The notes beneath the pieces were generated by a model. It worked only from the letters and a program-made list of their open reading frames with translations. It did not search any database and was not told the DNA's origin. Below, piece after piece: positions 690-63,423 of a stretch of DNA of 64,000 nt. How positions within the stretch are numbered: position 1 is the stretch's first letter; each line of letters opens with the position of its first letter. Position numbers and translations under genes: made by a program. The stretch is from Oikopleura dioica (Eukaryota > Animalia > Chordata), in the NCBI GenBank assembly GCA_907165135.1, contig OU015569.1:806001-870000 (forward strand), written 5' to 3'.

Positions 690-6140
<5,451 letters not shown>

Positions 6141-35505: not shown

Positions 35506-38328
35506 TTACAGTTGGTAGATCAAGAAGCGCATGAAAAAGTCCTTCGATCCTCCAGTTGGCATGATGATCAAGTCCGAAGTCGTCAGCGGAGACGACAAGC
35601 AAGCAGTCTTCTGTTGAGTCACGTCTTTTGTATCAACCTCGATCGTCTGAAATAGAACTTGTTGATTGATTTGTTTCTCATATTCTTTTATGAAAGAGTT
35701 CAGCCTCGAACATAAGCGCATGACTACATTTATTACTAGCGCGTTCCAAAATTAGCCCGATCCCGGAATGGAGTTCAGGGAGCATTATCCAAAATTAACT
35801 AATCAAGAATATCGTCCGAAAATAGATTCGGCAAGAGGGATGAAAAGCCCGATTACGCAATACTACCTGTATGAATTCTCTGTTTCCACTCTCCGCGCCG
35901 GTGTTATATAAGTTGAACTCTGAGACGTAGCCACCTTGACCGCCAGACGTGGTTATACAACTGATTGATTTGGGCTTTATTAGCGTTCCAAAAGAGCTCA
36001 GTAGCAGATTCTCTCTTGTATTAATTCAGGTGGAAGTGAGTGTTTACCTCATTATTCAGAATTTTAAGAGAAATATCCATTCTTTCTCGTTCAATCTGAT
36101 AATGTGCTGAATTAGACTCAGTCACTCCGATGCAATCAAGAACGCTTCCTGATCGAATGAGAATCGTACTGAAGGAAAACTTCTGAAACGTTCGCTTCCT
36201 TCGGTCCACTGCCACATTCCATCTACCCAGTCGATCTCGCCACTGTCTTCGGCGATTGAAGGGGCGTGACTGTTGTCTTTCTAGAGTCAACAGATTGCCT
36301 CACAGTATATTACCAAAATTTGACCAAAAGTTAAAAAGGCCAATTAATTTCAAGGCAATAGCAATCTGGGTTCGGCAACCTGAGTAGAAAACCTGAGTCA
36401 GGGTTCTTAAAGAGTAAAATGAAAAGCCGCGTAGCGGCTTTTCAAAACGAAGCCGCAAAGCGGCTTCGCCAAACTTACCAACTCAATGAATTTTTAACTA
36501 GCGAAGCCGCTTTGCGACTTCGTTTTGAAAAAGCCGCTACGCGGCTTTTCATTTTACTCCTCTAGAATCCTGACTCAGGTTTTTCACTAAGGTTGCCGAG
36601 CCCAAGTTGCTATCATGATCCCTATTAATTTTTGTTAGCTTAACTGGTAACCCTTGACTAGAGGATGGCCAGGAATGAGATCAGACAAGGGTTGAGGCTC
36701 GTCGAACGGAACTGCTATCGGAATTTGTGGAGGGGCGCATTCGTCTCGCTCTAGAATTATAAACGTGATTCTTATTATGGCTCAATTAACAAAATTCCTG
36801 CTCACTCGGAATGTTGCTTTTCAAAGCCAGTACCAGTTTATTAGTGCATTTTATTGTTAGAATCGGCATTTGAGAAATTGTTCTTTAGAAAAAGCTGAAT
36901 GGAACTGATAGCGTCGCCGGGATTCTTGAGAAGGAAAACAATACCTTGATAGTACTGGGTGCCGGTGGGACAGTCGCAGCCGAAGGAAGGCGCGAAGGTG
37001 TCATGAGGGTTGGGATAGCGGCGACACCTGCCACCGAAGCACTCGGGCGCGTCACCATTGTCGCAGGTCATGGTGCCGCAATCGAAGCCGTCCCAGCCGT
37101 GTTCGCAGGAGCAGCCGCGGGGCCCGAGCGCGCCATGGATGCACGGATCGACCACGTCGTTCTTCACCGGACAGTGAGCCGCTCGTTTGATGTATAAATC
37201 GTAGTTCTTGTCGTCCGCGTAGCTTTTTGATGGGAATGGAGAGAAATGCACTCCTGTCAGCTTATAAGAAGAGATCGATTCCCGTTCCTGAGCCCTGCGC
37301 TTTCGGGCGTCTGTTCCAGCAAGAAGCACCAATTATTCACTAAGCGGTTAAATTTAACTCCCCGATTCTAAGTGCGCGAAGCTGGCACAAAATTCTACTC
37401 ACGTTTGTGGTAGCGGAAAGCTGCGCATCGTCGCCGCTCTTCTTCGTTCCGGCTGATTCGGGTTAAATCGATGTACTTTTCGCACTCCAAGCGACATTCG
37501 AACGGGTTCGCTACTTTTACGAATTTCAGCTTCAACGACCAGATCACTTTGTTTTCGTCGAGATCGTAGCCTTCTACTTCTTTGGGACCGTCAACGAGCG
37601 GGCGGCACGGCTTCTGAAATAAATTTCTAACACCAAGATCAATCTTTCTCAGATTCTTGGCTCGGCAACCTGTGTAAAAACCTGAGTCAGGGTCTAAAAG
37701 ATCTTTAATGAAAAGCCGCATAGCGGCTTTTTTAAAGTCGGAGCCGCAAAGCGGCTTCGCAAAATTATCATTCAAATCTATTTCTTCATTCTGGCGAAGC
37801 CGCTTTGCGGCTCCGACTTTAAAAGCCGCTTCGCGGCTTTAAATTAGAGATCTCTTAGACCCTGACTCAGGTTTTCTTCACAGATTGCCGAGCCAAGCTC
37901 ACGTCTTTTGTTGTAGTTGTAGTAGTAGTTGTTGTTGTCGTCGTCGTCGAAGTTGTCGTTGAAGTCGTTGTCGAAGTCGTAGTTGTACTCGGCCTAGTCG
38001 TCGTTCTCCAGATATAAGATGATGTTGATGTGGTTCTCCAGTCAGTAGTTCGCCAGTAATAGGGCTCTGGAGTTGGACTGCCTTGAATTTCTGGCACTCC
38101 ATATGAATCATACACAGCATCAATCTGGCTTGGAATTTCGGGACAATCTGGCCGAGTGAACTCAGGATCTGCACAAATCTCCTCCAGGGTCGCTACTCTT
38201 GTCTGCTTGTTTCCATCTGGGTCGTAGTAGCTTATGTAATACTCGTAATTACTGTCGCCGTAGTAATTACTGTCCTCGTAGTCAGCAAGGATGCATTTAG
38301 CGGCGCAAAACCAGACAGCTAGTTTCAT
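35506..38328 (-). CDS. Secreted modular glycoprotein: signal peptide, Tyr/Asp-rich segment, poly-Thr mucin stalk, PAN/apple-like, EGF-like x2, probable F5/8 type C (discoidin) domain
   Basis: MKLAVWFCAAKCILA signal; about 30 Thr run; FECRLECE..RCAAFRY; CIHG..GCSCEHGWDGFDC; final exons ITTSGGQGGYVSEFNL and LSSPLTTSDLIIMPT..FMRFLIY resemble a discoidin fold. Confidence 0.65.
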
Positions 38329-43411: not shown

Positions 43412-46384
43412 AGCGAAAATCGTCTTGTTCAAAGAAATGACATTTACCAAGAATTTTGAATTTGAGCTTGACTACATTAACTTGTGCGATGTGATAGAGA
43501 AAATAACGAGATGTCTGAACCTAACAGAAACGGAAGGAGAACACTACACTTGCCCTTCAAAAGTAATTAGTGGAGAGGATGGAACTTTGTGTATCCCTCC
43601 TCAGAATTCTACCGCCTCATTGAATTCTAGCGTTTGTCCTGATTCTATGTACGAGAGTGGCAAAGATTTTGATGATCGAATTAAATTTAATTTAGAAATT
43701 TAAGGAGGTAGATATCAAGAATCGCCATTTTCCGTCAGACTTTTCTCCCAAAGTTAAAATAGTAACACCCTTATTTTACTTTTGAAACAAAAACTTTAGA
43801 CCTTTCTCTGTTTCCTATGGAAGCCGAAATTTCCAATTTCAAGAATATTTTTAACATTATTTATCGTCAAAGATCGCTAACTTTCCTAAAATGGTCATTT
43901 TATCATCAAGAAGAGGTGCATTGTAGCACCTCAAAAGCTCAAGAAATCTAAATTTTTGGCTTCCATAGGAAATAGATAATTGCCTGAAATCAATTTTGAG
44001 CAGAAAAATAAGGGGTCACTATGTTAAAAATTTGAGAAAACACAGACGGAAAATCCGATTCTTGATATCTACCTCCTTAATAATTCCATTAGTCCATAAA
44101 GACCTAAGAAGCATCAAGAATTTGTCACCTCTTTTCAAAGTCCACAGAACACTTCCAAACCAGCAAAATACTATCACTTCGTCGACCACATCGAACTCAA
44201 CTACAACCTTTCCTCGGACAAGAAACTGCTCGACGACTTCTCGGAGAATATGATCGACTTCCGCATTCAGAAAATTGTCTTTCCACTAATTTGCATCATG
44301 TTTTGCGCCCCAGCCGTCTATTTGCTCAAGCGATATTTCAAGAAGACGCAGCGGGTGATTGTTCTGATGAATCTACTCCTCAGCTCGACTCTTTATTGCT
44401 TCTCTTTTCTGGCCATGGAACCGATTTACAAAAGAATCAACAATTTAGTAGACGACGATGTTATTTCCAGGGAAAGATTTCGTGCCGCGATCAACCAAGT
44501 CGACATTGACGGGCAAACTATTGCGAGCTGGGCTCGGCAACCTGTGTAGAAAACCTGAGTCATGCTTTGAAAGGCTAAAATGAAAAGCCGCGTAGCGGCT
44601 TTTGAAAACGAAGCCACAAAGTGGCTTCGCTGATACTAAAAGATATAAGAGTGATTTTGTTGCGAAGCCGCTTTGCGGCTTTGTTTTCAAAAAGCCGCTA
44701 CGCGGCTTTTCATTTTAGCCTTTCAAAGCCTGACTCAGGTATTCTACACAGGTCGCCGAGCCCAGATTGCGAGGAAAATAGTCTTTTGAAAAGCAATAGC
44801 GATTTTCTGCAGAATATCAGCAAGAAAATTGAGTGCTCTGCTTATATCGAGAATTACGAGAAAGTAATGAACATTTGCTACGTTTTTCAATATTTCAACG
44901 ATTATATGCTCATGGCGCAGAGCAGTTGGTATCTTTTACAGACGATCTATCTTGCGAATTTGACTCTTTGCAATTTCGGGGTCTTGGCAGGGGATAAATT
45001 CTCTCCTTATTGGGACTAAACCAATTTATGGAAGTGCATTTTGGATTACCAATAAGATTGCTGTATTTGGCTTTCCGGTCAATCAAAACCCTGATCCTTA
45101 TCTTGATACTTGACTAGTACTGAAGAGAGAGAGAGGTATCCCTTTGAGAGCCAATTTTCCGCAACCATATTTACATTTTTCTTGGTTGGTTGGCGCCTCT
45201 ACCTGTCCTAGCAATGGCAATCTATGTAAACGGGATAAAAACGGTTCTTTCAACTTTAGCTTTATTTCAGATGAACCACCCAAACGAAGTCGACCATTCC
45301 TTTCATCACATGCGGATGATCAGCGGCTGCCACGGGAAGTACTCCGAAGAGGTCTTTGGTCAGATCGACGAACCAAAGCACACTGTTTATTATTTATGCG
45401 TGCAGATAGCGTGCAACATTATTCTCTTTGTAATAACAGTGTACGCGATCCACAGGAAAATCTATCTCAGCGCGGGTTTCACAGAAGGCGAGCAGAAGAC
45501 GAAACTCCACCAAATGTCCCGCGCTGTCTTTTATCTAATGTAAGACAAAAAAATATCAACAAAAATGAAGCCCACTTTTAGACCGCTGTTCAATATTTTT
45601 CAAATCACAGTCCACTTCTTTCCAGAAAATTATCTCTCCACGAAGAAAAGTCACCTTTCTTCTACAATTCATCTGGTTCTTATAGAAGGTATTACCGCTG
45701 GACTCGGCAACCTGAGTCAGGCTTTGAAGAGCTAAAATGAAAAGCCGCGTAGCGGCTTTTAAAAACGAAGCCGCAAAGCGGCTTCGCCAAAGTTACCAAC
45801 TCAATGAATTATTTTAACTGGCGAAGCCGCTTAGCGGCTTTTCAATTTACTCTTTTAGAACCCTGACTCAGGTTTTCTACTCAGGTTGCCGAGCCAAATA
45901 TTACTTCTTAGTTATTTCTTCTTGTGTAGTTATGGAATTTTTAGTGAGTCAATTTGTGTATCCGATAATCATCGGAGTTTTATTCGTGCTGATGAGCCAA
46001 GAGCTGAAAATCAAGTTCGCGCGGATGATAAAACTGGGGATGACCCAAAAGTATTTGAAGAAAAGATCTGACTTTGCGTACCTAAGGTGATTCTAATTTG
46101 CTGAGCATGAGGGAAAAAATGACTGTATTCAGAAGGAGGACAGTTTCATGCACGTCCTATCAGAACCTGGGCTCGAAAACCTGTGCAGAAAACCTGAGTC
46201 AGGGTCTGGAACGACGCGGCTTTTCATTGCAGATCTTCCAGGCCCTGACTCAGGTTTTCCACACAGGTTTTCGAGCCCAGACCAGAACGAGCTGAATCAG
46301 CTGAGCGAAATGACTACAGTGTCACTTCTAGACCGCGACTCAAGAATGGAATCTTCAGAAGGAGCTCTTTATGTGAACATTTAA
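43412..46384 (+). CDS. Divergent class B (secretin/calcitonin-receptor-like) GPCR; 5' end unresolved
   Basis: Hormone-receptor-like ectodomain (CPS....DGTLC.P......CP...DFD). TM segments include MNLLLSSTLY, ICYVFQYFNDYMLMAQSSWYLLQTIYL, IYIFLGWLAP, SRAVFYLMPLF and IIGVLFVLMSQEL. Confidence 0.65.
43704..44076 (+). mobile_element. TTAA-targeting non-autonomous DNA transposon (Kolobok-like), copy 2, in a GPCR intron
   Basis: TTAA|GGAGGTAGATATCAAGAATC...GATTCTTGATATCTACCTCC|TTAA. Confidence 0.85.
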
Positions 46385-46617
46385 TGAAAAAATAAAAGAA
46401 AATAAAGCAGATTTTCATGTTTCGGACTTTCTAGCGTTTTTTGCTCACTTCCGGCAGCGTGATATAACGATGAGTTGGCAAAGGGTTTGAATCTCTGGCG
46501 CGCGGTTGGTAAAATGCAAATTGTCGATCATCGCTGTCCGCAGATGATTTTCCGCGTGGCATCTCCGCAAGGGGCTTCGCAAGAGTTCCGACTCAGACAC
46601 TTTTTAGAAGCAAGAAA

Positions 46618-48136
46618 ATGAGACCCTTACCTTTCTCTTTTTACATTTTCCTAGTTTCCTTTTCTAAATCAGAGAGAGCGCGGACAGAAGATTACTACAG
46701 ACCGACGAGGAAGCAGCTCTACGAGTTGCTCAAAAATCCGAAGAACAGTGATATTGCTCGAGGATCGCAGTTTGGGCAGGTGACATGGGGCAGGCCTCCA
46801 AACGAAAGCTACCAAGATAGCAAGCTCTGTCCGCGGCTAAACAATCCGAAAGGAGCTTCAGAAGTAGTTTGCAACGGCGCTACTTGCGTTGTCAATTGTC
46901 TTCCAGGGTCAGAGTCCATCTGCTTATAGCAATTGTTTTTCATAAGATACCGATGATAGCAGGCCTTTGCCCGGGATTGCCAGGTTATCCGGTCAGCCAA
47001 TCACAAGACAGGATTCTCCTAGTGGCGGCGTAACCCCGGATTTGAGTCTGCTCTCATCGGTATCATTTTTGTTGATTCCAGTAAAAGGTTATCATCCGAC
47101 GCCAAAGGGATCTGATCGAACAAATTGCAGAGCTTCCGTTAATTTCAAAGGCTCGTTATTTAATTTCTGAACTTCGTTAGATTTCAAGAACTGAGATTAA
47201 AAAACGGAGAAAAAGGAGAAACCCGATATTACTGGACTCATCAGTTGTCTGACTGTGTGACTTGCTCGGAAGATGAGTTTTCTGATCCTCAGATAGCGAG
47301 TTTTTGTTTCGTGAGGGAAGGAACCAACGAAAGGCTCTGCGATCTCAAATGCACCAACGGTGGCGATCTTCGTTTCCCAGGTAAATCAGCAGCTCGTTTG
47401 CCTTTATTGACGTTTGCAGCTCTTTTCGGCGCGCCAGTTCGGTGTTTCTGCCATAGAAAGAAGAATAAGGGCTGCTACTGGACCAGAGAGAAAGGAAAAA
47501 CCAAGCGGGTATTTCTCAACAAGATCAAATGCTCCGGACCTCCTGCAACCGTCCCTCCAACAGAACCAAAGTCCACCACGAAATTTTCGCGTTTTGATAG
47601 CGGAAATTCTCCGTCGCAAGGAAGCGATTCCAGTGCGTCTGCCAGCGGGGCCTGCAAATGCTTAGAGTACAAGGAAAAGTACACGGGTAGCACAGGTACT
47701 TGTCTACTATAACAACTCGTTCACAAGCTTTGAGTTTTTCAGGGGCGAATGTTCGACCAACCTGGAGTTGCCCGGACAGTTTTCAAGTGCACGGCGGGGC
47801 GAGGATACCTTCCGGCTTCGATAAAACTGGAAAAGTGAAACTGACCTTTTCCAGAAAAGTTTCAATAAAAAGTGGCAATTTCCCATCGCCAGTTTTGAGG
47901 AAAAAGAGGGTAACTTATGGGAAGTTGGCTTCAACGAGAGAACCACTTTCAAACGCGACTGGTTCAGGCAACGGCTACTCTTCTCTTTTCATTTGAAAGT
48001 CACTTCTTTTGAGCTTCGAAAATCTTGAAATTTTGATGTACCACGAAGGCTAGCTAGCCTAAAAAGAATCAATTTCGAAGGAACGCATGACAAGTACATG
48101 CCGCGAGTGGACAAGCTCGAGTTCTGCTATTGCTGA
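46618..48136 (+). CDS. Secreted Cys-rich protein with sushi-like repeats, unknown family
   Basis: Hydrophobic N-terminus MRPLPFSFYIFLVSFS; repeated C..P.G....C....C...C..G spacing; Pro/Thr linker; ends FCYC*. Confidence 0.55.
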
Positions 48137-48965
48137 ATCTCTCTACTGTTTCAATAAACTAAACCTTTTCTGTAATCATTTCATCAAAAATCTTAAAACA
48201 TTGCAATTTGCCTTCAAGATTCCCACGATGAGAGCGCAGTGATAATTCAAATGTAAACGATTCTGCTGACAAACTCAAATATTTTGATCATTCGCCACCG
48301 CAAATTTGGAAGAAGACTTTCTTCTCGAACCGCATATTTACAATCATTATGGCTTAATTTGCCGAAATTTCTTTATAATGTTCAATGAAATTGCCACCGA
48401 CGTCACGAATTTCGAAGAATTTTTAGACCCACAGAAGCTTTTGGCAAATTTTACCTCATAAAAATGTAAATAAATAGCTTTTCTTTTTTAAAAATCGTCA
48501 GTTTTATACTGGCAAATCGACCTAATGACAGTATATCTCTGTTTGAGCAACTCTTTTTCGGGGGTAAATCATCTTAGGATGATTTTAATTATTGAAGTCA
48601 TAGAAGACTAACGATGTCGGTCAATTTTTGTTCTATAGAAAGAAATTGATCGATTGTCTGTTTTGTTTCATAAATGAGCTCAAAAGCTAGTTGCTCAAGA
48701 AGAAAATCGTAATTTTCAGTGAACTTTGATTTGTTGAAAATGCAAGTGGTGACGACTTTGTATGCTGATTCTGGGTTTTTCGATAATTAGAAGCGCAACG
48801 GCGAAACCACTGGTGATTCCCACTTGAGACAAACACTCGTAAATAATGCCTATGCTCCGAAGCTCACGCAAGCCGAGCTTTATAAGCAACTTTGGCCTGC
48901 ATCGGAAATTATCAGTTTCAAACTGCGAGATACGATCGTAGTTGAATTCAGCCAGCTTTTGAAAG

Positions 48966-49984
48966 ATGAAGCTCGCCGCCTTTATCATCGGGTCCCTTTA
49001 CGCCCAAGATGCTTACGAGTACACCTACGGTAAGGAAGAGAAAGAGAGCTTTCTAGAGAGTTTAGCAAAAAGGCAGAAAGGTAAAACGTAAGTTCAGATA
49101 GCGACATCGCTCGCACCGACTACGCCGACGAGTACTACTTCTACGAGTACATTGACGAGCTCGGCAACAAGAAGAAAAAGAAGAAGAATAAGAAGAACAA
49201 GAACAACAACTACAACAACAACAACTACAACAACAACAACTATAACAACAACAACTACGCCTCCGATCCATACAACTACAACACCGGCTGGAACACCGGA
49301 TACGCCGCCAATTATGGCGCTAAAGTCAGCGACGGATCCGGCAAGGGCGTTGACTCAGATGTTGTCGGCAACGGTCGATTCTGCTGGAACTGCAAAACTA
49401 CGATCAAGATGAAGTACGACTCCGATGGTGTCTGGACCGGCTATGAGGACGCTTACGATTCGTGCTTCGATGATGGCTACATCGAGAAATGCGTCGGCGA
49501 AGAGTACTACTGCGATTGGGAAGAGCGTCGCCACAAGGGCGTCGTCGTCGGTGTTGCCGGAGGCTGCAAGGCTCCAGAGGCTTGCTTGAGAGGAATGATC
49601 CAGAACTTCCACTGGAAGGTGAACACCTACAACGATCCCAAGGTCAAGGGCGATCAATGCAAGGCTGGAACCTTGAGAGAGACGAACATGTACCCCGATT
49701 CTGTCTGCCGATGGTGCTGCGACGCTCTTACTGACACTCTCGACCGATACGAGCCCGCTATCGCCCAGCTTTGCAACCACAAGTCATACGCTGGATCTCC
49801 CGGCAAAGCATACGACACGGACAAGGGTGCTACTTTCGTCTGGGCCGCCGATGGCAACCTCTTCAACGGGCTCAACGTCGATGGCAAGTTCCACTCGCTT
49901 TTCATGGTCCACAGGCAGTACGCTCTTGGGCAAGGCGCCGGCACTCTCAGCGCAGGCGACATGGTCCGCGGACAATTTTCTTAA
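48966..49984 (+). CDS. Secreted protein with Tyr/Asp-rich N-terminus, poly-Lys, (NNNNY)n repeats and a Cys-rich three-finger-like domain (possible house protein)
   Basis: MKLAAFIIGSLYAQ signal peptide; GT-AG intron 49030-49097; CWNC..C..C..C.WEERR..GCKAPEAC..QNF..QC..VCRWCC..CN; strong C-ending codon bias. Confidence 0.75.
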
Positions 49985-50041
49985 ACTCAACACTCTCCGC
50001 TATTCAATACCAATAAAAACGCTTTCTTCACAATTTCACAA

Positions 50042-51792
50042 TTACACTTTATTTTTTCTCGTTTCTTGTTGCAGCATTTCCAGTGCCTTCGTCACGGCGT
50101 CTACAAACTTGAGGTGATAGTAGCCCAGACTTGAAAGTGATTGAACCACGATTTTGTCGCCGTGCAGTTTGTCGCGCAAAGTTTCTGGAATTTTTATTTC
50201 CGACTGTTTTTCCTTTTCCATCGCTTCTCTGTGCATTTCCAACTCGTTTTTCAAGAAATCAACGAGGGTAGTTCCGCAAGCAGGCGAATGGAGCTGCTCT
50301 ATTTTCATTCCATTTTCCAGCAAGCCGGCGAGAATGTCGTGAAAGAATTCGCAGCTGGGCTCGGCAACCTGTGTAGAAAACCTGAGTCAGGGTCTGAAAG
50401 AGCCAAATTGGGCCGCTATAGTTTGGAAATTGATTCAAAAAGTAGTTTTGCGAAGCCGCTTTGCGGCTTCGTTTTAAAAGCCGCTACGCGGCTTTTCATT
50501 TGGGCTCTTTCAGACCCTGACTCAGGTTTTGAACACAGGTTGCCGAACTCAGATTCACAGCCAAAGACGGCGATCTCGAAGAGGAAGTCATTTTCGTCCG
50601 CGAATTGGTAGAGGCATTTGTTTTTTGGATACTGTCGCATAAGAAGCTTTATGTCGTCGATTTGAAGGAAGTTTTTGGGCAGGCTGAGCACTCTAGAATC
50701 GCCAAGGATGAGGACAATCAGGCGAATGAGCATGACCCGAACTTCGCGGTCAAAATCTTTGACAGCGAGCTCAAGAACGCAGTGAATTCTTGCTTCGAAA
50801 GACTTGTCCTTTGGCGAACCGCAAAACGCATGGAACTCGTCTTGAAATTTTCAATTTATACGAAAGAGCGCTTTTTTTACCGTAAACAATCGGCAAGGAA
50901 TGCAGTCTCGAGTTGAGGGCGATCGAGTACTTCGATCGTTTCTGATTTCTGTAGCCCATGATTGTCTCTAAATCACGTTTTCTCAAGCGGTTTCGTTCAT
51001 TCGATTTTCGATTACCTAATTCCTCGTCTTATTTTGGATAGAATTTTCATTAGATAATCAGCACTTTTCTAGTCAGAGTTGCAAATTCTGCTTTATTTTT
51101 GCTGAGCTAAGCTGAGCTGGCCTATTTCGGAGGTAACTGAGCTGAGCTGAACTGAGCAGACCTTTTTTTTAAAGTAGTTGAGCTGAGCTGAGCTAAGCGG
51201 ACCCTAATTAGAGCTGAGCTGAGCTGGTTGAGCTGAGCTCTTTTTTACTGTGTTTTTAGTAGTAAAATTGTGTTAAAATCATTGAGCTGAGCTGAGCCAA
51301 GTGATAATTGTCTGAGCTGAGCTGAGCTGAGCAGAACAGCTCTTGCTCGAAAATAATTGTGCTGAGCTGAGTGAAAATTGTCTGAGCTGAGCTGAGAAGA
51401 TCAGATCATTTTCAAAAATCACTGAGCTGAGCTGAGTGACTGCTCAGCTCACTCAGCTCAGCAAATTTACAACTCTGTTTCTAGTTCCTTTTTTTCTATT
51501 CCATTCCTATGCTATTGAGTAGATTTGTGCAGAGAACTGTATGATGCGTCTGATACAAGTTTCGAATCTCATTCGGCAGTTCCTGATTTTGCCCTATAAA
51601 AAATGCAATCGAGGATGAAGTTTGCATCATCACGTCTGGATTCGCCAGATATTTCCATTTTTCGAACACGATCGCAAAGTAAATCTTCTCGTCGCTCCGC
51701 GCTTCCAAAAATTTGAAAATCTTCTCTTCGACCAGCCAGGGAGGCTCATTTTCTTTTGTCACTTCCCCTCCCAGACCTTGCCAAAAGTGCAT
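50042..51792 (-). CDS. Unknown protein, interrupted by a MITE at 50355-50552
   Basis: Long protein-like minus-strand exons. Removing the MITE and one TSD joins ...FEIAVFGCE to FFHDILAGLLENG in frame. Whether the 51496-51792 ORF belongs to the same gene is tentative. Confidence 0.55.
51074..51477. mobile_element. hAT-like MITE with internal (GCTGA)n repeats
   Basis: TIR CAGAGTTG(C/T)AAATT...; perfect 8-bp TSD TTTCTAGT (51066-51073 and 51478-51485); many GAGCT/CTGAG pentamers inside. Confidence 0.85.
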
Positions 51793-52097
51793 AATCCACC
51801 TACATGCATCTCACTTGCTCAAAATCAACGAAAAAGTCATATTCCGCGCTCGGAATTTTTGTAGAAAACCTGAGTCAGGTTTTGAAGAGCTAAAATAAAA
51901 ACCGCGAAACGGCTTCCTGTTTGAATAAGCCGCTACGCGGCTTTTCATTTTAGCTCTTCAGAACCTGACTCAGGTTTTTTACGCAGGTTTCCGAGCTCAG
52001 GCCATATCGTTAAAATGCTCTATTTTCACTATATTAACAGATACTGGCAGTTATACAAGTACAGCGCGAATTAATTAAAAAAGGGTCAATCAGGGAT

Positions 52098-53952
52098 TCA
52101 GCTGGAATTTGTGCCACTCTCTTCGTTGACTTTCTCTTGAAGCGTTTCTTCTGAGAATTTGTCTTTGGCCTGTTCAGGATGTTGCGCGTCCCAAAGAGTC
52201 GGGTTTTCAGCCTGGAGACCGGCAAGTCGCAGTTTTTCGTTGAAAAGAGCTCGGGCAAACACGTACAAATCCATCTAAAATCAAAATTTGTTTCCTGAAG
52301 ATTCCGGGTTTGTGAGACTGGGCTCGGCAACCTGTGTAGAAAACCTGAGTCAGGGTCTGAAAGAGCTGAAATGAAAAGCCGCGCAGCTATTCTTCAGAGT
52401 CTTTCAGCTCTTTGAGAGCCTGACTCAGGTTTTCTACACAGGTTGCCGAGCCCAGCTCTGAAAAGATCAGCATCTTACTACATCTACTACCTCGTGCGAC
52501 AACGGCCCTTTCATCAAAAACTCCTTCGCGGCGGTGGACATGTGTTTCTTATCCAGCGTCCTTGTTGTATTCATCGCTAGAAAATTACCATAAGAAACTT
52601 CTTCACCAAAGCCTTTATCATTACCTATCTTGGCAAACTCGGATCTCGCTGCTTCTCTTGCTCCTTTGAAATACTGCGGGAGGAGCTTTTGAAAGAGCGA
52701 AAGAGTGTCTTCGAATTGTTCCAAAATTCCAACGATGAAATAATCACGCAGGATTCGCTTCTTCGCGATTTCAGCGGCCGCAGCCTTGGCTTCGTAGCCT
52801 CTGCTTTCCCCTTGCAGGTTTGGGAGTTGCCGCAGAAAAAGCGGGTGTATTTCCAAACGACGGTGGTGCAGTCCTTCATCTTTCGACGGATGCAGGTGTC
52901 GATGTCGAGCCGCTCGTCCTCGAAGTCGTGGGAGTTTTCCTTCGTTCTCGCCCCAGTCTAAGATGACTTAAAATCGGAAGTTGGAGAAATCACACCTTGT
53001 GGATCCAACCATTCTGCTTGAACCAGTATCGACTCTCAAACCAGCTGATGGGCTCGCGCATGACGTTGATCCATGTGGGCGCTTCCATTCCGTACTCGGT
53101 GAAATTGAAGAAATAGTGATGCTTCATCACGGTCATCGGGGGCCGGAGAATCGACTTCAAATAGGCGGCTAAAAAGACGATAAGAAAATGAAGAGTGCTC
53201 CGTTTCCCTTACCAAGTCCTTCTTCGTCGTCGAACTTCATCATTGCCGAGTCGATTTTGATGTGTTCGTAGTTGTTCCACTGAGAAAGCATCGTCAAAAT
53301 GTTATGCATCGTGGTCGAACCGCATTTTGGCAACTTGTTGTGAAGTATAAAACCGGGATTCGGAGCTACCAGCGACTTTTTCAAGTTTTCAAAGTGCTTT
53401 TTAGATAATTTTGGGGTTTGAACTAGGGCTAGGATTTGTTAATAAGGGCTTATCTAATGAGAATCATCAAATAAAGCGAGATTAAAAACTCTCCTTTGGA
53501 GCAGCATTGAGAGTATCCAAGTCGACTTGCGAGAGTTCTGGTAAGGAAATTGGGGTGTCGCGCTGAATCAAATGCACTTCATCCTTCTTTTCAAGCATTT
53601 CAGCAAGCTGCGATTCGAATCCTTCAATTGGCGGCCTTGGTTTTGTTGAAAGCTTTAAAAATATCGTAAAAAATCGAACAAGAAAGTCGAACAATTCGAC
53701 ATTCTTAGATCTTACATGCGGCAGAAGTTTTTCCAGGTCAAGGTTTCTTTGCTGTACGAGAACGAACAAAACGACTAGAGTGATAAGAAGAACGGTCAGG
53801 ACAGCATTGCCGGCAAAGGACTGGGCGATTCGGCGACGAGCATCGGCGGCGCTCTCCCGTTTCGCGAGCTTGAGCCCCTTTGACGCCGATTTGGACCTCT
53901 TGGCGCCTTTCTTCTTCCCAAGAAGCGAGATCTTCTCCGACTTCGACTTCAT
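52098..53952 (-). CDS. Heparan-sulfate/uronyl 2-O-sulfotransferase-like type II membrane protein
   Basis: N-terminal TM (VLTVLLITLVVLFVLV); ILHNKLPKCGSTT (5'-PSB loop); YFIVGILEQFEDTLSLFQKLLPQYF; HE|MDLYVFARALF. Confidence 0.85.
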
Positions 53953-55169
53953 CCAGATCCGATTTCAAGACACTTCTCTCATTTCAAAAACTAACGGCTC
54001 CTTCGTTTTCCTCAACCTTTTCAGAAATCAAGAAGAGCGCTTTGAGAGCACCGCCGCGGGCAAAGTTGCTACTTCTTAATGAGATTCTTTCAACCTTTTT
54101 CCCAAACAGTCCTTTCCTGCTTGTACTAATCAACAGGAAGAATTCCAACCTTTGCTCGGCAACCTTTGTAGAAAACCTGAGTCAAGTTCTAAAGAGCAAA
54201 ATGAAAAGCCGCGTAGCGGCTTTTTATGAACAAAGCCGCGAAGCGGCTTTGCCATGATTACCAAATTTATCTAATATTTAATACAAGCGAAGCCGCTTCG
54301 CGGCTCTGTTCATAAAAGCCGCTACGCGGCTTTTCATTTTGCTCTTTAGAACCTGACTCAGGTTTTCTACACAGGTTGCCGAGCCCAGATTCCAACCTAT
54401 CAACTCTAGGTTCTCGGTTCTTCTTTCAAATAGTAGAAAAAATCACCAGTAGCGATAATGAATTTATTTTTTCGAATTCGGCAACGCCGGTAGTAGCAAT
54501 TTGCAATCCCAATTGTAATCATGGCCTCATTTAGTAGTAGTACACAGTATGAAAAGTTCATCCCTTTTCTACGTGATTACCCCTTCTGCAAATTAATTTA
54601 TGGACGACCAAGGCCTTCTTTCTTTGAAACTGCAGCAAAAAACAGTAAGCAACAGCGAGTCAGCATAATTTGAGAAGGCGAAAATGTATAGAGAGAAGAG
54701 TGCGGCTTCTCAATTATTGACCAAGACCGTGACGAGTCGATCAAGCGTTGTTGAGAGTTCTGAAAGCTCGTAACGCAAGATGCATTAAGATAGATACTGT
54801 AAGCAGCAAGTGAGCTGTTCAATTAGCGCACGCATCACGCCAACAGTTTGCTATTAACTAGCAGGATGAGCAGCGTGCTTAAATGTTTAATTTCACCTCT
54901 TTGCCTCGAGATTGATTCCCTCTCAATTAATTTAGCCCTCTCTGATTTCCATTAATCCGCTCGGTAGCTGCTCGACGGCCCAGAATAGTAGCGCATGCAC
55001 GCGCTTATCGACGCTACTAGCGCGCTTCACCGTTGATCCCTTTCACTCTGACGAGCACCAGAGCTCACATACGACGCCCGACACACATAAGCCCATCGGC
55101 GCCCAGAAGTTAAATTCGACGAAAGAAGTATGCTCTTCGTTTTCTTTTTCTAGAGAGAGACAGAGTAGT

Positions 55170-55922
55170 ATGAAAATCAAGCTTCTCCTGATGGCTACTT
55201 TGTTTGTGGAGCTTGTTATTTCTGACCTGGGCTCGGAAACCTGTGTGGAAAACCTGAGTCAGGCTCTGAAAAAGCTTGAATGAAAAGCCGCGTGGCGGCT
55301 ATTTTTTAAAACTTCGCGGCTTCTTTTACTAAGCGGCTTTTCATTTATGCTCTTAAAACCCTGACTCAGGTTTTCTACACAGGTTTTCAAGCCCAGTTTC
55401 CGACTGCGCTGAGAAATTTATTGCCAAGTGGTTTTCAAAATTCTTGCTTGAAATTGGAAATTTTGCGAGATTTTCTTCCTTGATTTCGTCAAAGTTGAAA
55501 TCCAGAAAAGACAAAATCAAAGCCTGCCAACAAAAGTTTTTCGATGGAATGGTGCTGACCAGTGGTGCCAATTGCCGCGCTCATTTCATCAAGCTCTCAG
55601 CCTGTCTGGATTCTATTCAATGCTTGAGCCCGGCCACAGCTGCTGAAAACAACACGGTCTGTATTTTTGGCGTTTTAATTGACGATAGAAAGAAACAGGC
55701 TCGAAAGAGCGGTTGATTATCAGTCTTTGACGGATTAGTTCAATTTTCAATACGGCTCGTTGCCAGAATTGAGTATTTAGTAGCAGAAGGATGAAAATCT
55801 TAAAATTGATGAACGTTATGCTAACCATTACTATTACTTCTGCTTTTCAGGAGCTCAATCGTGGAATGATGGCGTCTTTTTGGACCGGGTTTAATCTGAA
55901 TACGTCTCTCGAAAAATCTTAA
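55170..55922 (+). CDS. Small secreted Cys-containing protein, interrupted by a MITE at 55227-55396
   Basis: MKIKLLLMATLFVELVIS signal peptide. The frame continues DCAEKF...ACQQKFF..NCRAHF..CLDSIQC after MITE removal; last exon ELNRG...EKS* follows a GT-AG intron. Confidence 0.6.
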
Positions 55923-57327
55923 ATACACGTTTTTGGGGACAATTCAGAAGGGGAAGTTCAAAACTAACGGCTTTTTCTCGATGATTTTCTCGATGAGAAG
56001 GTTTCGTTTTTGTACTCTTCCCAACGCTTGAGCTCATTTTCGCGCACCTTGGCCATGTACTTCCCGTACTTGCTCGTGAATAAAAAGAGGAATATAAATC
56101 GCCTTCAATTTAGTTCAGCATTATTCATTATTCAACAAATGCTTGTTGATATATTTCAATTTTGCGGTTATCTTTAGTTGAACCACTTGAATAAAGAACA
56201 ATATACATACAAAATTGAGCAACAAGCTCGCCGAAACAATGATCTTTTTAATGAAATGCACATTGTCCGCTTTTTTACAGTTTTGGCTGTCTCTACTAAA
56301 AATTAGAAAATGACAACTTTCAAAACTTTCATGAAATATATTCTTCAAACTTCGCCAAGATCGGCCAAAAAGCCATACTCGAAAATCCGAAGAAAAAAAT
56401 CTTCGAAAAAGTCACTTTTTATACAAAAAACTTGACATCAAAACAATACATCATCAATTCCCCCCATCATCTTCGAAGGAAGGCAAATTAATCCCATTGA
56501 ATAAGTAATGATGGTGGCTTGAGCAAACCAGTTCTGGGCGAGTTTGGTCGATTCTGTCAAAAGTCCTACTTTGAGAAAATCGAGCAATGTCTTGAGCCAT
56601 GGGCTCGGCAACCTGTGTAGAAAACCTGAGTCAGGGTCTGACAGATCTTTGATGCAAAGCCCCGTAGCGGCTTATTTACGGCTTCGATAAAAAAAAGCCG
56701 CGGCTTTTCATTTTAGACCTTTCAGACCCTGACTCAGGTTTTTTGCACAGGTTTCCGAGCTCAGCTTGAGCCCTTTCATCGAGTGTTCCGTTCGAATCCG
56801 GCAGACATGGAGCTATGCGGGCTGTACAGACAGGGAAGAGTGTCAACCTGTCAGTGGTCATTTCATTTCAGTGACGTTAAAAATAGATAGATAATATTTT
56901 GATGATGCGAAACAGGTCACAATTAATCGGAGCAATGATCGCTCATAAAAAATGCCGCGTCTAAAATAAGCTACAAATAAAAAAAGGATAAAAGCTTTTA
57001 TCTAAAGACAATATTGACAACTCATGAGAGGGCTCACTTTGCCGACAAGAGCTGGTGCAGAAAGGAAAGAGATATTATATTCGATTCTGAGACGTCTGAC
57101 TGAATGATCGATTCAATTCAATTTCGATAAACTCGTGTCTGAAAGAATCTCAAACTAGAGTGTGCACTTCCGCTGAGTTTCGCTTCCCACTGGCAGCGGA
57201 TGAACGAGTTGTACGCCGACTGGAATCCGTTTTGCAGCGCAAAAAAGCGAGCTGTTTCAAAATTAAAAATGCCTCAAGATCAACCAGCGCCGGAAAATTT
57301 TCCGACTCCGAAAATTCGCGAGTCGTA

Positions 57328-57583
57328 TGAAGGGATCCTAGCTTCTGCTGAATCTCCCACTTCTAGCGTAGTTTGCCTGCTCTCTATATCTGGACGAGTG
57401 AAGAAAACGAGTAAAGTATCTTTGACGTCTGTATTTCGAGCTGGAGTAAAATAGAGGTTAATTCACGAACTGCGTGAATTACCGAATGGAGAGAAATACA
57501 CGGCGGCGACCGAGCAAAGCTCGATCTAGATAAGCAAGTGACCTTAGGGGACGAGGGAGTCTAACGAATCTAAGATCCCAATA
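57328..57583 (-). repeat. 3' LTR
   Basis: Identical by eye to 61360-61615; preceded on the minus strand by a G6 polypurine tract (57584-57589). Confidence 0.95.
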
Positions 57584-58002
57584 CCCCCCATGAGACTGAA
57601 ACGTCCTCTAAGGCCAAAGTGTGTGATTTTTGCAGGAGTATAAGCGTAAGATGAGTAACATGGCAGGTTCGAAACGTCGAGGCAGTCTGATTCGCGTTAA
57701 AAAACCCTTTTTTGGGAAAAAGCTTGAATCAGATGCGAAGTTTTCGTGATGTCCGAGCGGTGATGACATGAAGGAGTAGCTGCACATGTAGAAGAACTCA
57801 AAATACGTCGGCGACGGTAAACTGTGATAATTTCCGTACCTTTTCAGGCCCCGGTCGATGAATAGGGGACCTGAGTGGGGCAGTACTTGCGCTTAGTCGT
57901 ATGACTGACCCGAGTTTGTGCCGATGTTTAGAGGTTCGACGGGCCTCGTTTCACGGTGTGCTCGTTTTGTATGTTTCGGGAGATGAGCTGCTCCAACTTC
58001 GG

Positions 58003-59174
58003 TTAAAGTCGCATTCGGATCGGCGCCGGCTGAGTATTGACGATCTGGTGAAGACTTTGGACGGGTTCTTTTGGGTTCTTTCGGGTGTGGGAAATCGCGC
58101 TTACTAGGTGCACTCTCCCGCCATACTCTTGTAGCAGAACACCACCCGCTGCGTACAGGCTCGCGTCTGTGTAGAGGTGAAAAGACTCGTCAAAGTTAGG
58201 AAAGCTTATGACAGGAGTCTCGGAGAGTCGTCGTTGAATTTCCTTGAGCGCCAAATCCGCTTCTTTGGTCCACTTGAAACAATTTGTTTCGTTCGCCGAA
58301 TTTCGAACATCGTTTATGGGTTTCATTCTGCTCGAGAAGCAACCGGATGAAATAGCTTCGCCCATTTTTGTTTCTAGAAAACCTCGGATCCAATTCAATG
58401 ACCCGATTAATGAAGCTAACTCCTTTTGGGAGCGTGGGGGTTTCATCTGACGAAGGGCGGAGACTTGCGCAGGGTCCGGTTTGATTCCTTCTTCGTTGAT
58501 GATTCGGCCCAAAAAGTGAGCTTCTGATTGTAGGAAAGAGCACTTTTCGCCCTTGAGTTTAGCGTTAAACTTGCGGAGCGCGATGAATAGGTTTCGGAGA
58601 GTGTTGTAATAGCAGCTGAAAGACTTCCCAAAACATACTATGTCATCGATATAAGAAAGCATCTTCTTCCTGGTGGGGCTTGAGTCGAGAATCGTGTTTA
58701 CGACGCGCGAGAATATATTCCCCGAGCATCGATAACCGAAAGGTAATCTGCAGAAGGCGTAAGATTTCCCACCCCACTGGAAGGAAGTCTTATACCTATC
58801 GCTTTTCTTAATAGGGCACTGCCAATATCCGCTCCGCAAATCAACTGTGGCGAAATACTTGTTGCCCGGTCCAATGTTCGCGATCGTATCCTCCATGCTC
58901 GGAAGATGATATGGGTCGGATTTGTCGGAGAGGCATTTGTTCAAGCTGTTCTTGTAGTTGATGCAGAAGCGCATTTCCCCAGATTTCTTAGGGATTGGCA
59001 GAACGGGGCTATTAAACCCTTTCTGGTCCTTGATCTCTTCTATTATTTTCGTATCGAGCAGTTCGGAGATGTGATCAGTGACCTGGCCATGAAAAGCTTG
59101 CGGAATAGGGTGTTGACTGATGTTTCGACTCGTACCATCAGTCGGGATTTCGATCTCGAATGGGAATTCACCCA
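58003..59174 (-). pseudogene. Reverse transcriptase plus truncated RNase H, out of frame with gag-pro
   Basis: SPVLPIPKKSGEMRFCINY, DLRSGYWQ, LPFG, YIDD, FLG and YTDAS; similarity ends at about 58084. Confidence 0.9.
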
Positions 59175-60848
59175 TTTTTGACCGTCGCAGCCGAATCTGT
59201 CGTCGAAATCCAAACACAGCTCGGCGACCACCTTCTTTTGCCCCGGGTCGGCGTTTGCTGGTAGGGTAATTCCGAGTTTTTGCTTCGCTAGCTGAATGGG
59301 GCACCTGGCTGCGTTCTTGTTAGGTGCGTCCAGCTTTGGGACTTTTGGTGGCGGTTGAGTGCGGGATCGATCGCTATCCTTGACCGCTGATCTAGTAGTC
59401 AAGTATTTCTTGATTTTGGTCCGCTTCACTCCGTCCAGCTTCACCACTTGAGTCTCAGTTTGTGTGAAGGCTTCGTTGTAGCAAAATGAGAGAGTACGAT
59501 TCTTATTGTCGACTGTGAAGCTGTCCGTCATCGCATTCTCTAGTATATCGCGGCCCAGTAGACTTGGGTATTTACTGCCTGGCATAATGGTGAGATTCAG
59601 GGAGAATGCAGGGCCACCATTGAATGATAAGCGGCAGGGAAGGATACCCATCGGCTGCTCGGCGGGAATATTTGGGCTGAAACCGGTGACCTTGAAGGGA
59701 CAGGGCTTCAGCATCTGGAGAAATTCGTCGGGAACGTAAGCAGCGGACAGACAGGAGGACTCGGCTCCGCTGTCGACTTCCATCGATACGTCAAAACTTT
59801 TAGAGCCCGTAATGATGGTAGCCGAAGCGAAATAAGCCTTTCCTGGTCGCTTCTTCTTCACTGTGTAAAAGTGAACGTCGAATGGTTGGAAATCTTCAAC
59901 GTTCTTAGTCGTATTTATCTTCTTGGATTCTGGTTGTTTATCGTCTTTCCCATCCTTAGAATCGTTGCTGGCGCGCTTAGCATTCTTCTTCTTTTTGTTC
60001 TTATTTCTGTTGAAGTGCTGGGAGACGGTCGCGCTGTCAACTCGATTCTGTCTTGTGGATTGGGCGAGACGGCAGAGTTCGTTGATATCGTAAACTTTTG
60101 ATAGGCTTGGAAGGATTGCGTTGAAAACGTCTGGTTCTTCTTTCCTAAGATTCAAGTACAGCATCATCGTCGAGAATATGTCAAATATTTCATCGACCCC
60201 GGCGTCGGCTGACTTCTCTTGTCGGTAAGAGTTCAAAGTCGCTTGCTTCGCCTCGTTCATCTTTTGCAAGACGTTGGCGGTGTAGTGTGCAAACGGCTTC
60301 GAATGGTCGTATTCGACGTCGAAAACTTCGCTTAGCTTCAGTAAGTAGTGACTCTTCGCGGCGAATGATTTCTCTAGCAGCGCCTTGGCCGATTTCCAGT
60401 CTTGACAATTCAGAAATTCGGTTCCAAGTGAGCGTTCGATGTTCAAGTCGAAGTGGCTGTACACTGCTGCGATGAAAGGCTGTTCACGTGAAGGTCTGTC
60501 GCGGACGTAGGCGCGGTGATAAATGTCGGCTCTGCCCAAGAAGGTGTTGAAAGATGTGTTGCATGCGGCGTCCAGCTTCGGCAAGTCTTGGACGTGACGA
60601 GACCAGGTAGTGGCCACCCATGCTTCTTCTCTCATTGTCGCATTCGTAGAGTCTTTTCCTTGATCGAGCTCGCAGGTAAGAAGCGTTGTACTGAGCTGTT
60701 CTAATTTTACTCTGCTTTCTGTGATCAAGGGCTCTAGGCTTGGCTTTAGTGATTCGTCATTTCGCACTTGTTCTTCGAGGTAGTTTACTCGATCGTTTAT
60801 GCTTCTTATTTCGGTGACGGTTTCTAGCAGTGATTTGTTCGCCGCCAT
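59043..60848 (-). CDS. Gag-aspartic protease ORF of the retrotransposon
   Basis: 601-aa ORF with an N-terminal coiled coil, basic KNKKKKN and the protease motif VDSGAESSCL...LLGRDIL. Confidence 0.85.
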   Translation of the reverse strand: MAANKSLLETVTEIRSINDRVNYLEEQVRNDESLKPSLEPLITESRVKLEQLSTTLLTCELDQGKDSTNATMREEAWVATTWSRHVQDLPKLDAACNTSFNTFLGRADIYHRAYVRDRPSREQPFIAAVYSHFDLNIERSLGTEFLNCQDWKSAKALLEKSFAAKSHYLLKLSEVFDVEYDHSKPFAHYTANVLQKMNEAKQATLNSYRQEKSADAGVDEIFDIFSTMMLYLNLRKEEPDVFNAILPSLSKVYDINELCRLAQSTRQNRVDSATVSQHFNRNKNKKKKNAKRASNDSKDGKDDKQPESKKINTTKNVEDFQPFDVHFYTVKKKRPGKAYFASATIITGSKSFDVSMEVDSGAESSCLSAAYVPDEFLQMLKPCPFKVTGFSPNIPAEQPMGILPCRLSFNGGPAFSLNLTIMPGSKYPSLLGRDILENAMTDSFTVDNKNRTLSFCYNEAFTQTETQVVKLDGVKRTKIKKYLTTRSAVKDSDRSRTQPPPKVPKLDAPNKNAARCPIQLAKQKLGITLPANADPGQKKVVAELCLDFDDRFGCDGQKWVNSHSRSKSRLMVRVETSVNTLFRKLFMARSLITSPNCSIRK

Positions 60849-61347
60849 AGCTCGAAATATATCGGCAGTAAGGGTTTATGGGCCTTGGATTACCTTTCAG
60901 GCCCTCAGAAAATACTGCGACTAAAAGTCGCAATATGATGAGCTGAGGTGCCTTTTGCGCAAACGCCCGACGATTTCTCTGTCCAGCGATTGTCGAAATT
61001 TCAAGGTCTGGTCCAAGGGTCGATTCTTCGTAAACTTCTCTCGATTTTTGGTGAAAAGTGGCGAAAGAATTATGTTTTTCTCAGTATTTTAGGTTTTCCC
61101 CGGCGTGCGTGCGTGGTTGCGTGGGCGCGACTTTCGGCGCGTGGGTCGTGGTGGCGCTCGTGCGGTGGCGCTCGCTCGGGGTGGTGTTGGTGTGGTGCGG
61201 AAAATTCTCTGAGTGGAGTTTCTCCGGCGGCGCGGTGGCGGTTGGTGATTCGGTTCCCCTCGACTCCGCTGACGGCCAATCAGCGTCCAAGTTGCGAAAC
61301 TTCGGTTGTCGATGGCGGAAAAATTTATCTTTTCTCCAACGGGACTA

Positions 61348-61358
61348 CTCTGATACCA
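61348..61358 (-). promoter_or_regulatory. tRNA primer-binding site
   Basis: TGGTATCAGAG begins 1 nt after the 5' LTR and resembles the familiar iMet-type PBS motif. Confidence 0.85.
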
Positions 61359-61359
61359 C

Positions 61360-61615
61360 TGAAGGGATCCTAGCTTCTGCTGAATCTCCCACTTCTAGCG
61401 TAGTTTGCCTGCTCTCTATATCTGGACGAGTGAAGAAAACGAGTAAAGTATCTTTGACGTCTGTATTTCGAGCTGGAGTAAAATAGAGGTTAATTCACGA
61501 ACTGCGTGAATTACCGAATGGAGAGAAATACACGGCGGCGACCGAGCAAAGCTCGATCTAGATAAGCAAGTGACCTTAGGGGACGAGGGAGTCTAACGAA
61601 TCTAAGATCCCAATA
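61360..61615 (-). repeat. 5' LTR
   Basis: Minus-strand termini TATTGGGATC...GATCCCTTCA; followed by the PBS. Confidence 0.95.
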
Positions 61616-62539
61616 CGTACAAAAGCAAAAGCGATGTGGACTACGAAATAGTAGGAAAGGCTTCAAAAAGGATTAATACCAGGATGTTAAATTCAAAGAG
61701 CTAGAGTGGGCAATCTGCGTAGACAGATTCCTGAGTCAGGATCTTAAGAGCTAAAATGAAAAGCCGCGTAGCGGCTTTTAAAACGAAGCCGCAAAGCGGC
61801 TTCGCGATAGAAGTTCTATCATGGAACCATTCGAGTCTATTATTAAAAATAGTTGCTTTTCATTTTAGCTCTTTTGATCCTGACTCAGGTTTTTCTACAC
61901 AGTTTGCCGAACCCAAGAATCTTGAGCTTGTGAAAGTATTTAACCACTCCGCGCGCAACTGGAAAAATTACGAATTGATAACTATGTGCCTCGTCTCAAT
62001 CTTCTGTCTATTGTTCTTGTAAATTTCGCAAAAAAAAAAGAAAATTCACAACACTGCCATCTACTTATTAATAAATGAAGAATTCTCTTCAGAAAATTAC
62101 GCCCTCGCTTCTTTCTATTTTTACGTCCTTCAAGAGCTTCAAGAGTAAAAGTGCTTTCTGGTGGAAAAATGGTGAATTTGAAATCAATCCGGAGAAGAAT
62201 GAATCGAAAGGACTCGCTTGATATGCCTTTGCTAAGAGTTTTTGAATCAAGACGGCAGATTTGCCTCGGCAACCTGTGTAGAAAGCCTGAGTCAGGGTCT
62301 GAAAGATGTAAATTGAAAGCCGCGAAGCGGCTTTTTTAAAAACTAAGCCGCAAAGCGGCTTCGCCAAAAATCAAAAACTGATCGAAACGAGAATTTCGCA
62401 AAGCCGCTAGGCGGCTTCGTTTTTAAAAAAGCCGCTTTGCGGCTTTCAATATACATCTTTCAGACCCTGACTAAGGTTTTCTATACTGGTTGCGATGCCA
62501 GACTGCAGAATAAATGAATTTTGAAAGTTTGAAAGAGTT

Positions 62540-63423
62540 TTGTCAATTTTTCAAAAACTCGAAATTACGAACAAGCCGCTATTGCCGAAAATCGAAGAGG
62601 TAGAGAAAGTAGACGGTGATTTCGACGCGTGGTATGAACGCAAGTTCCTCCGAACGCACAGAATTCAGACGTTTCTCGAGTGGCTGGGTAATTAAAGCGC
62701 GATTAGCAGAAGAGAAGTAGTGATGCATTTAAGTTCTCGCCGTGGCGGTGTTTTTGCTTACTTTAATTTATTACTACCCGAACGAGTTTCATTTTCACGT
62801 GGCGAAGGGATACGCTCATCTAGGCTACGACATCGCGCAGCATCAGATGGGCTTGAAGCACTACCACGGGGTCGGAGTCGCAGAAGACAAGAGGGAAGCA
62901 ATGAAATGGTTTAAGGAGAAGGTTATCTCGTGTCACTGGACGAGATTGATTGACTTTGCCGTTTTTGATTGATCACGCGCAATTTCATCCCTTTATTTTA
63001 TTTCATGACCTTCAAAAAAAAGGCCGCAGCAGATCAGGGACATCATGAAGCGGCAATGCACCGAGGAATCGGAAACATTCACGGCTTCACTGACCCGAAA
63101 GACATCACACCAGGTTGCATTAACTTCCCCTCCCCGCAATTTAATTCGGTCTTTAGGAGAGACAGAGCGATACTTGAAACACGCGGCAGACAACGATCAC
63201 CACCAAGCCTGGGTTCGGCAACCTGTGTAGAAAACCTGAGTCAGGGTCTGCCAGATTTTTAAATCGATAAGAATAATGGTTTAGCGAAGCCTCTTTGCGG
63301 CTTCGCTTTTCGTAAAGCATCTTTTAGACCCTGACTCAGGTTTCCTACATAGGTTGCCGAGCTCACCACCAAGCTAAGCAAGCTCTCTACCATTACTGTC
63401 ACAAGCAGAATAAATGTCCATAA
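62540..63423 (+). CDS. SEL1-like repeat protein with a hydrophobic segment; last exon interrupted by a MITE; start unresolved
   Basis: AQHQMGLKHYHGVGVAEDKREAMKWF..AADQGHHEA and YLKHAADNDHHQA are SEL1 repeats. Removing the MITE gives ...HQAKQALYHYCHKQNKCP*. Confidence 0.7.

Follow-up and report, generated by a model that had tools for sequence, protein, structure and literature searches.

Can a transposable element that lands in a coding exon be turned into a spliceosomal intron, and can a whole repeat family be fit for that purpose? These questions are raised by a 64,000-nt stretch of the Oikopleura dioica genome (OU015569.1:806001-870000, in the X-specific region of the OKI2018_I69 assembly; hereafter the window), which contains many copies of a short palindromic element, designated family A. 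The initial annotation of this stretch had proposed that family A is an active generator of introns, removed from coding exons in either orientation with an unchanging 12-nt scar. We find that one copy, at position 50355, is inserted in a conserved coding exon of the gene g13487 and has probably become an intron, while family A as a whole is unlikely to be a dedicated intron generator.

Family A is a miniature inverted-repeat transposable element (MITE), with many short copies, terminal inverted repeats (TIRs) and target-site duplications (TSDs) of a fixed length of 8 bp. The 10-mer with which the TIR starts, CTGGGCTCGG, occurs 27 times in the window when one mismatch is allowed, versus 2.05 expected occurrences and 7 in the highest of 100 shuffles, which bears out the family as first described, and the copies at 46167, 50355, 55227, 56599 and 63209 are all at the positions originally given for them. 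Fifteen copies in the window have both ends (114-257 bp long), with a perfect 8-bp TSD in five and a TSD with a single-base difference in another five, and a BLAST census gave 36 segments totalling 5,302 bp, or 8.3% of the window, corresponding to some 30 copies or fragments. In the alignment the TIRs are conserved over approximately 37 nt and flank a variable core. The cores (for instance at 44570-44720) are built from short GC-rich hairpin modules of the AAGCCGCGTAGCGGCTT and GAAGCCGCAAAGCGGCTTC types, and the number of these modules accounts for the range in length of the copies. The 8-bp TSD agrees with the hAT superfamily; the ends of family A read CTGGG...CCCAG and do not fit the YARNG type of terminal motif which we take to be that of hAT elements. 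No autonomous hAT-transposase partner was found within the window, and beyond the window no search was made. Family A is best explained as a non-autonomous cut-and-paste element that is abundant in the Okinawan O. dioica lineage.

A protein search with the open reading frame (ORF) beside the copy at 50355 returned an identical annotated protein, Oidioi.mRNA.OKI2018_I69.XSR.g13487.t1, which could be regenerated exactly from the three exons listed here together with the other features of the locus.

50355..50552, minus strand: family-A copy of 198 bp, within a coding exon of g13487
50553..50560, minus strand: upstream TSD copy, CTGTGAAT in gene orientation
50347-50354, minus strand: partner TSD copy, CTGCGAAT
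50042..50959, minus strand: host gene Oidioi OKI2018_I69 XSR g13487, 236 aa, with exons 50959-50881, 50840-50549 and 50381-50045, then the stop codon
50382..50548, minus strand: annotated (predicted) second intron of g13487, 167 nt, GT..AG, lying wholly within the element

In gene orientation this copy starts with CTGA followed by GTTCGG and ends with ...GAGCCCAG. The annotated intron has its donor at TIR position +5 and its acceptor (CTCAG) 27 nt from the other end, and it leaves 39 nt (13 codons); in the annotated protein (P0001), which reads ...AVFGCE-SEFSTQVAEPSCE-FFHD..., TIR-derived residues are found between GCE and FFHD. The OKI2018_I69 assembly was made from one male and annotated by AUGUSTUS with hints from RNA sequencing (RNA-seq), with 11% of the annotated introns being non-canonical (PMC8008620).

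The insertion is absent from three other lineages. A contig from a related lineage in ENA (L001) aligns to both flanks of the element with a 9-nt overlap and therefore has a single target copy and no element: the 8-mer target is present once, in a continuous ORF reading ...AVFGCEFFHD.... This contig is genomic DNA, since intron 1 of g13487 is still present in it. Two more distant orthologues, L004 (Logan) and L005 (JGI), likewise have an uninterrupted ORF at the site, and no family-A TIR was found in any of the three loci. The comparison with empty sites, proposed in the initial annotation as a check, thus places this copy in a conserved coding exon, and the presence or absence of the element, with a single target at the empty site of L001, is also what is expected of a MITE. 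When the copy is excised in frame, 96/104 codons are open (left/right of the site, as in all such counts below), versus about 30 in frameshift controls.

The filled site was found in the window haplotype, in a second ENA contig that is 94.7% identical (L002) and in a DNA run from another individual (X4), whose contigs terminate inside both ends of the element. The element of L002 occupies the identical site and has the derived TIR bases A at +4 and T at +6 in common with the window haplotype, so the insertion is older than the split between the two. Mismatches between TSD copies had been described as synonymous in the predicted frame; the TGT/TGC difference of this copy is real and synonymous, whereas TAT and GAC, given for another copy, are not synonymous. 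TGC is found in the upstream TSD copy of L002, which makes the T a later change in the window haplotype, and the base is exonic in every model and so does not discriminate between models.

Purifying selection on g13487 is evident both across and after the insertion. In a comparison of the window with L001 the gene has a dS of 0.71, a dN of 0.046 and an omega of 0.065, with the same value up- and downstream of the site, and the sequence VFGCEFFHDIL, which surrounds the site, is the same in both. Exon 2 has 10 synonymous and 5 non-synonymous changes between the two carriers, the window haplotype and L002 (pS 0.164, pN 0.022, pN/pS 0.13; binomial p = 2e-4 against neutrality). The downstream exon has neither stops nor indels in its 104 codons, and only 7 non-synonymous differences in total between the window and L001; a hand calculation (half of the carrier dS, about 0.09, times 218 non-synonymous sites) gives a neutral expectation of ~20 non-synonymous changes on the window branch since the carrier split alone. 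Polarisation with outgroups assigns 6 synonymous and 4 non-synonymous changes in this exon to the carrier branch. Across four lineages, conservation of the protein is stronger in its downstream half. Since the assembly was made from a single male and the locus is X-specific, the allele is hemizygous, and thus the sole copy in a viable animal.

The persistence of the element under purifying selection is most simply explained by its in-frame removal, and from this we infer splicing. The copy would have landed in the middle of the conserved exon and behaved as a spliceosomal intron since then. As donor, the GT at TIR +5 is the most likely, derived from the GC of the family by a C-to-T change common to both known carrier haplotypes; the sense-strand TIR has only two changes in its first 20 nt, at +4 and +6, which create this GT. 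For the acceptor, the most likely candidates are the AGs of the opposite TIR, and the mRNA would retain a scar of 12, 24 or 39 extra in-frame nucleotides. The main candidate pairings are as follows.

Donor +5 with the terminal CAG: +12 nt, adding SDCE; the rule of the initial annotation, whose scar arithmetic (8+4=12) is correct
Donor +5 with the AG at -27: +39 nt; the annotated intron
Donor GA at +3 with the AG at -14: +24 nt, in frame and stop-free
Donor +5 with the AG at -14: +26 nt, a frameshift

Of the 36 TIR ends in the census, 3 had a GT at +5/+6, including the sense 5' ends of the copies at 50355 and 63209 (Fisher p = 0.013 for these two copies with two further variant ends counted, those of the copy at 4899 and a fragment at 1672; p = 0.07 when the four candidate exonic copies are all included). 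This excess of GT at the sense 5' ends of candidate exonic copies is suggestive, and post hoc.

The claim that further copies sit inside coding exons, where their excision restores an open frame, fared unevenly. The empty-site orthologues place the copy at 50355 in an exon, and the sequence makes an exonic position plausible for the copies at 46167, 55227 and 63209; such a position for the copy at 56599 found no support.

46167..46280, plus strand: copy of 114 bp, in a plausible last coding exon (C-terminal tail) of a secretin-type G protein-coupled receptor (GPCR)-like gene
46088..46133, plus strand: putative 46-nt canonical GT..AG intron, predicted from sequence, which would remove two stops after transmembrane segment 7 (TM7) and join the tail exon
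55227..55396, plus strand: copy of 170 bp, after a signal-peptide-like start; excision restores a 200-codon open stretch
63209..63366, plus strand: copy of 158 bp, in a plausible last Sel1-like repeat exon; GT at TIR +5, terminal CAG changed to CAC
56599..56764, plus strand: copy of 166 bp; exon placement without support

The coding-exon placement of the copy at 46167 depends on the predicted intron 46088-46133, which would lead into ...RRTVSCTSYQN, the element, and then ELNQ...YVNI-stop. In-frame excision of this copy leaves 27/31 codons open and that of the copy at 56599 32/39, in neither case better than frameshift controls, although the right-hand frame at 46167 has a coding-like codon score. 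Its host had a 7tm_2 match below threshold in Pfam, and a representative search with the GPCR piece gave fragments only and no orthologue. The open frame is restored better than in controls for the copy at 55227, as it is for the one at 50355: in-frame excision leaves 97/103 codons open versus 25-38 in frameshift controls, and the codon-usage score is best in the excision frame. There is no annotated gene between 53952 and 60959, and a homologue search with the ORF at 55227 found nothing. For the copy at 63209, a coherent Sel1-like model (...ERYLKHAADNDHHQ/AKQALYHYC...) runs across the site and in-frame excision leaves 66/16 codons open, with the Sel1 match on the upstream exon being below the Pfam threshold. 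Pfam searches with the ORFs flanking the copies at 50355, 55227, 56599 and 29858 gave no match, and an ESM Atlas search with the g13487 protein gave no meaningful family.

Most of the family-A copies in the window are located in intergenic or unannotated DNA or in pre-existing short introns. At least five are in older introns with splice sites outside the element, assigned as follows.

44528..44765, plus strand: in a GT..AG intron of the GPCR-like gene (44499-44812, or 68 nt when the element is subtracted), which joins TM2/extracellular loop 1 to TM3 in frame
45698..45898, plus strand: in another GT..AG intron of that gene (45689-45929, or 32 nt when the element is subtracted), which joins GPCR segments in frame
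52318..52455, minus strand: in the last intron of an annotated 440-aa sulfotransferase-like gene (53952-52098)
37656..37897, minus strand: in a putative intron with GTGAG donor and TTTCAG acceptor outside the element
4899..5155, plus strand: in an intron of a DCLK/CaMK-like kinase gene, with Pfam Pkinase matches on both flanks

The copy at 4899 led us to reject an open frame across an excised copy as proof of an exon: excision leaves 96/111 codons open, yet the copy lies within the kinase intron. That intron (4825-5236) has 144 nt without the MITE and is open in frame with both exons, which is why the ORF test alone wrongly suggested an exonic copy. We also do not claim that copies are depleted from exons, as coding sequence makes up ~26% of the annotated 21 kb and holds 1-2 of the ~10 copies there, which is not significant.

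Several further observations were made on these genes and their surroundings. The DCLK-like kinase apparently needs a GC..AG intron at 5858-5951 (CTAG/GCACGG ... AATAG/CAAG) for the conserved spacing of DLIRQLL and NPKKRLT, while a GT alternative to the GC donor at 5858 would add ~17 residues; the donor at 5858 is plausible, and the likeness of the family-A GCTCGG to it, earlier brought forward as an argument, carries no weight. In the GPCR-like gene, the N-terminal exons (TM1-TM3; 44250-45016) are without a gene model, and a public 383-aa model (45214-48136) begins inside TM4 and continues through Cys-rich, secreted-looking ORFs at 46513-47709; it is probably a chimeric or truncated prediction around three MITE copies. 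In the sulfotransferase-like gene, a near-identical metatranscriptome contig (X8) skips 44 nt at 53169-53212 and so confirms an intron there, which also shows that environmental RNA of the window lineage exists. Finally, two long overlapping ORFs of 601 and 433 aa on the minus strand at 58003-60848, without gene annotation, have gag/protease-like and reverse-transcriptase-like sequences and probably belong to a Ty3/gypsy-type (Tor-like) retrotransposon.

Weighing these data, we consider it probable (roughly 0.6) that the copy at 50355 became a new spliceosomal intron with the GT at TIR +5 as donor and an AG in the opposite TIR as acceptor. Several points weigh against this. The best acceptor by the usual rules, ACACAG at 14 nt from the end and preceded by a T-rich tract, gives a frameshift with the +5 donor, and in the fold of the element RNA (dG -120.7 kcal/mol, z -13.3) both splice sites are buried in a stem of ~58 bp. 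Because the annotated intron has canonical GT-AG ends, an ab initio prediction by AUGUSTUS, without RNA support, could account for it. Region 50150-56149 was compared with reads from two raw RNA runs, one metatranscriptome and the DNA run X4, and within it no reads of the two RNA runs fell on the hosts of the copies at 50355 or 55227; these two runs are from a divergent lineage, with nearly all reads at <95% identity, and cover only the sulfotransferase exons and a repeat at 51442-51477. Spliced g13487 junctions, with the flanks 10-40 nt apart, were also sought in JGI contigs and gave no match, and the selection test after insertion is direct for the upstream exon only. The lack of such reads, the canonical ends of the annotated intron and the reach of the selection test would suit an element that is not spliced at all, with a truncated or null carrier allele that reads into the element, where the frame stays open for ~50 more codons, with the annotated intron being an artefact of the predictor and the downstream exon a residue. 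We regard this as unlikely, since such a residue would not be expected to remain intact with far fewer non-synonymous changes than predicted under neutrality, in what is the more conserved half of the protein, and the allele is carried by three sampled haplotypes and, as sole copy, by a viable male. Separately, a CTCAGCT/GAGCTGAG simple repeat at 51420-51480 attracted ~100 partial reads per run from the divergent-lineage libraries, and expression there was rejected as a mapping artefact of partial reads on a simple repeat.

The RNA fold of the element can also be read in another way, as the nearly perfect and very stable stem brings the two ends of the element together, with the +5 donor and the terminal AG 4 bp apart, and could guide excision as in the nonconventional introns of euglenids, or double-stranded-RNA processing; MITE-derived introns spliced at non-canonical ends are known in the larvacean Fritillaria borealis (PMC11282704). 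Such hairpin-dependent removal is very improbable: O. dioica introns are ~89% GT-AG (PMC8008620), the copy at 50355 has a canonical GT, and nothing in the present data points to a route other than the spliceosome. The short distance between the two ends would also suit an active, purpose-fit generator, as originally proposed, in which every exonic insertion is spliced in either orientation from +5 to the terminal CAG and adds exactly four codons. The 12-nt arithmetic holds, its product is open for the copies at 50355, 46167 and 55227, the copies at 50355 and 63209 have a GT at +5, and up to four exonic copies are possible in the window. The terminal CAG is not present in each copy, as had been claimed, since the copy at 63209 ends in CAC and lacks the acceptor for the 12-nt product, and for the copy at 50355 the annotation takes the acceptor at -27. 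Nor is frame-neutrality special, with 4/9 of the donor/acceptor pairings listed for that copy in frame versus 3 expected by chance, and at least five copies, those in ordinary introns, use no TIR splice site. Current activity is not evident either: each of the six copies checked is shared with X4, a conspecific ~3.6% diverged, whose contigs break off within the element ends at 50355/50552, 51844, 52318/52455, 54150 and 55227, so that none of these insertions is private, and the insertion at 50355 predates the pS of 0.164 between carriers. Such a generator is therefore improbable, and it is the probable splicing of a single old insertion in g13487 that we carry forward.

The closest mechanistic parallel to this is found in maize, where Ds and dSpm (in work by Wessler and colleagues, and by Giroux et al. 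in 1994, cited in PMC3443670) are reportedly spliced from exons via sites in their termini, as seen in cDNA. These are also non-autonomous elements with an 8-bp TSD that sit in exons and leave a short in-frame scar; the differences are that they are from a plant and rest on cDNA evidence, compared with the evolutionary evidence for g13487.

Within the same species, intron gain by transposon insertion is already listed for Oikopleura in two reviews citing Denoeud et al. 2010 (PMC3296678, PMC3443670), which describe inserted transposons, massive intron turnover and a tolerant U2 spliceosome. The copy at 50355 would thus be a transposon-derived intron of a kind already known in O. dioica; to the earlier cases it adds three lineages in which the site is empty and a test for selection that compares two carrier haplotypes. 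Another larvacean, Fritillaria borealis (Henriet et al. 2019, as described in PMC11282704), likewise has introns with TIRs and TSDs at lineage-specific positions, although these are mostly AG-AC or AG-AT and dominate the genome, whereas the window has GT/GC-AG candidates and one proven exon insertion in 64 kb; family A, with candidate sites of GT or GC together with AG, lacks the non-GT/AG ends of the Fritillaria-type N-introns.

Introners are known in many protists and two animal groups (PMC9860276), and those of Micromonas, Aureococcus and dinoflagellates (Huff 2016; Gozashti 2022, PMC9860276) are likewise non-autonomous elements with TIRs and TSDs, in which the element's own end provides a splice site and thereby makes an insertion into an exon tolerable. 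As with introners, the host gene of the copy at 50355 has remained functional after the exonic insertion (pN/pS 0.13, intact downstream exon). Introner families are mostly genic introns spliced at or near their ends, whereas family A is mostly intergenic or in older introns (one copy proven and at most three more plausibly exonic, versus at least five in older introns) and would leave 12-39 nt. It is doubtful that the exon-splitting MITEs of this genome, family A included, are true animal introners, with palindromic ends that can be spliced in either orientation and stay open in every frame, so that exonic insertions would routinely become introns.

The origin of new introns in animals is largely unobserved, and in O. 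dioica most ancestral introns have been replaced, with intron phases showing an unusually even spread in Oikopleura (PMC3488318). If true, the introner reading would help to explain both this even phase spread and the extreme intron turnover of Oikopleura. The copy in g13487 offers a dated, polymorphism-backed case of a transposon that probably became an intron in a conserved exon, a concrete locus at which splice-site choice, the peptide scar and the contribution of the hairpin are accessible to measurement.

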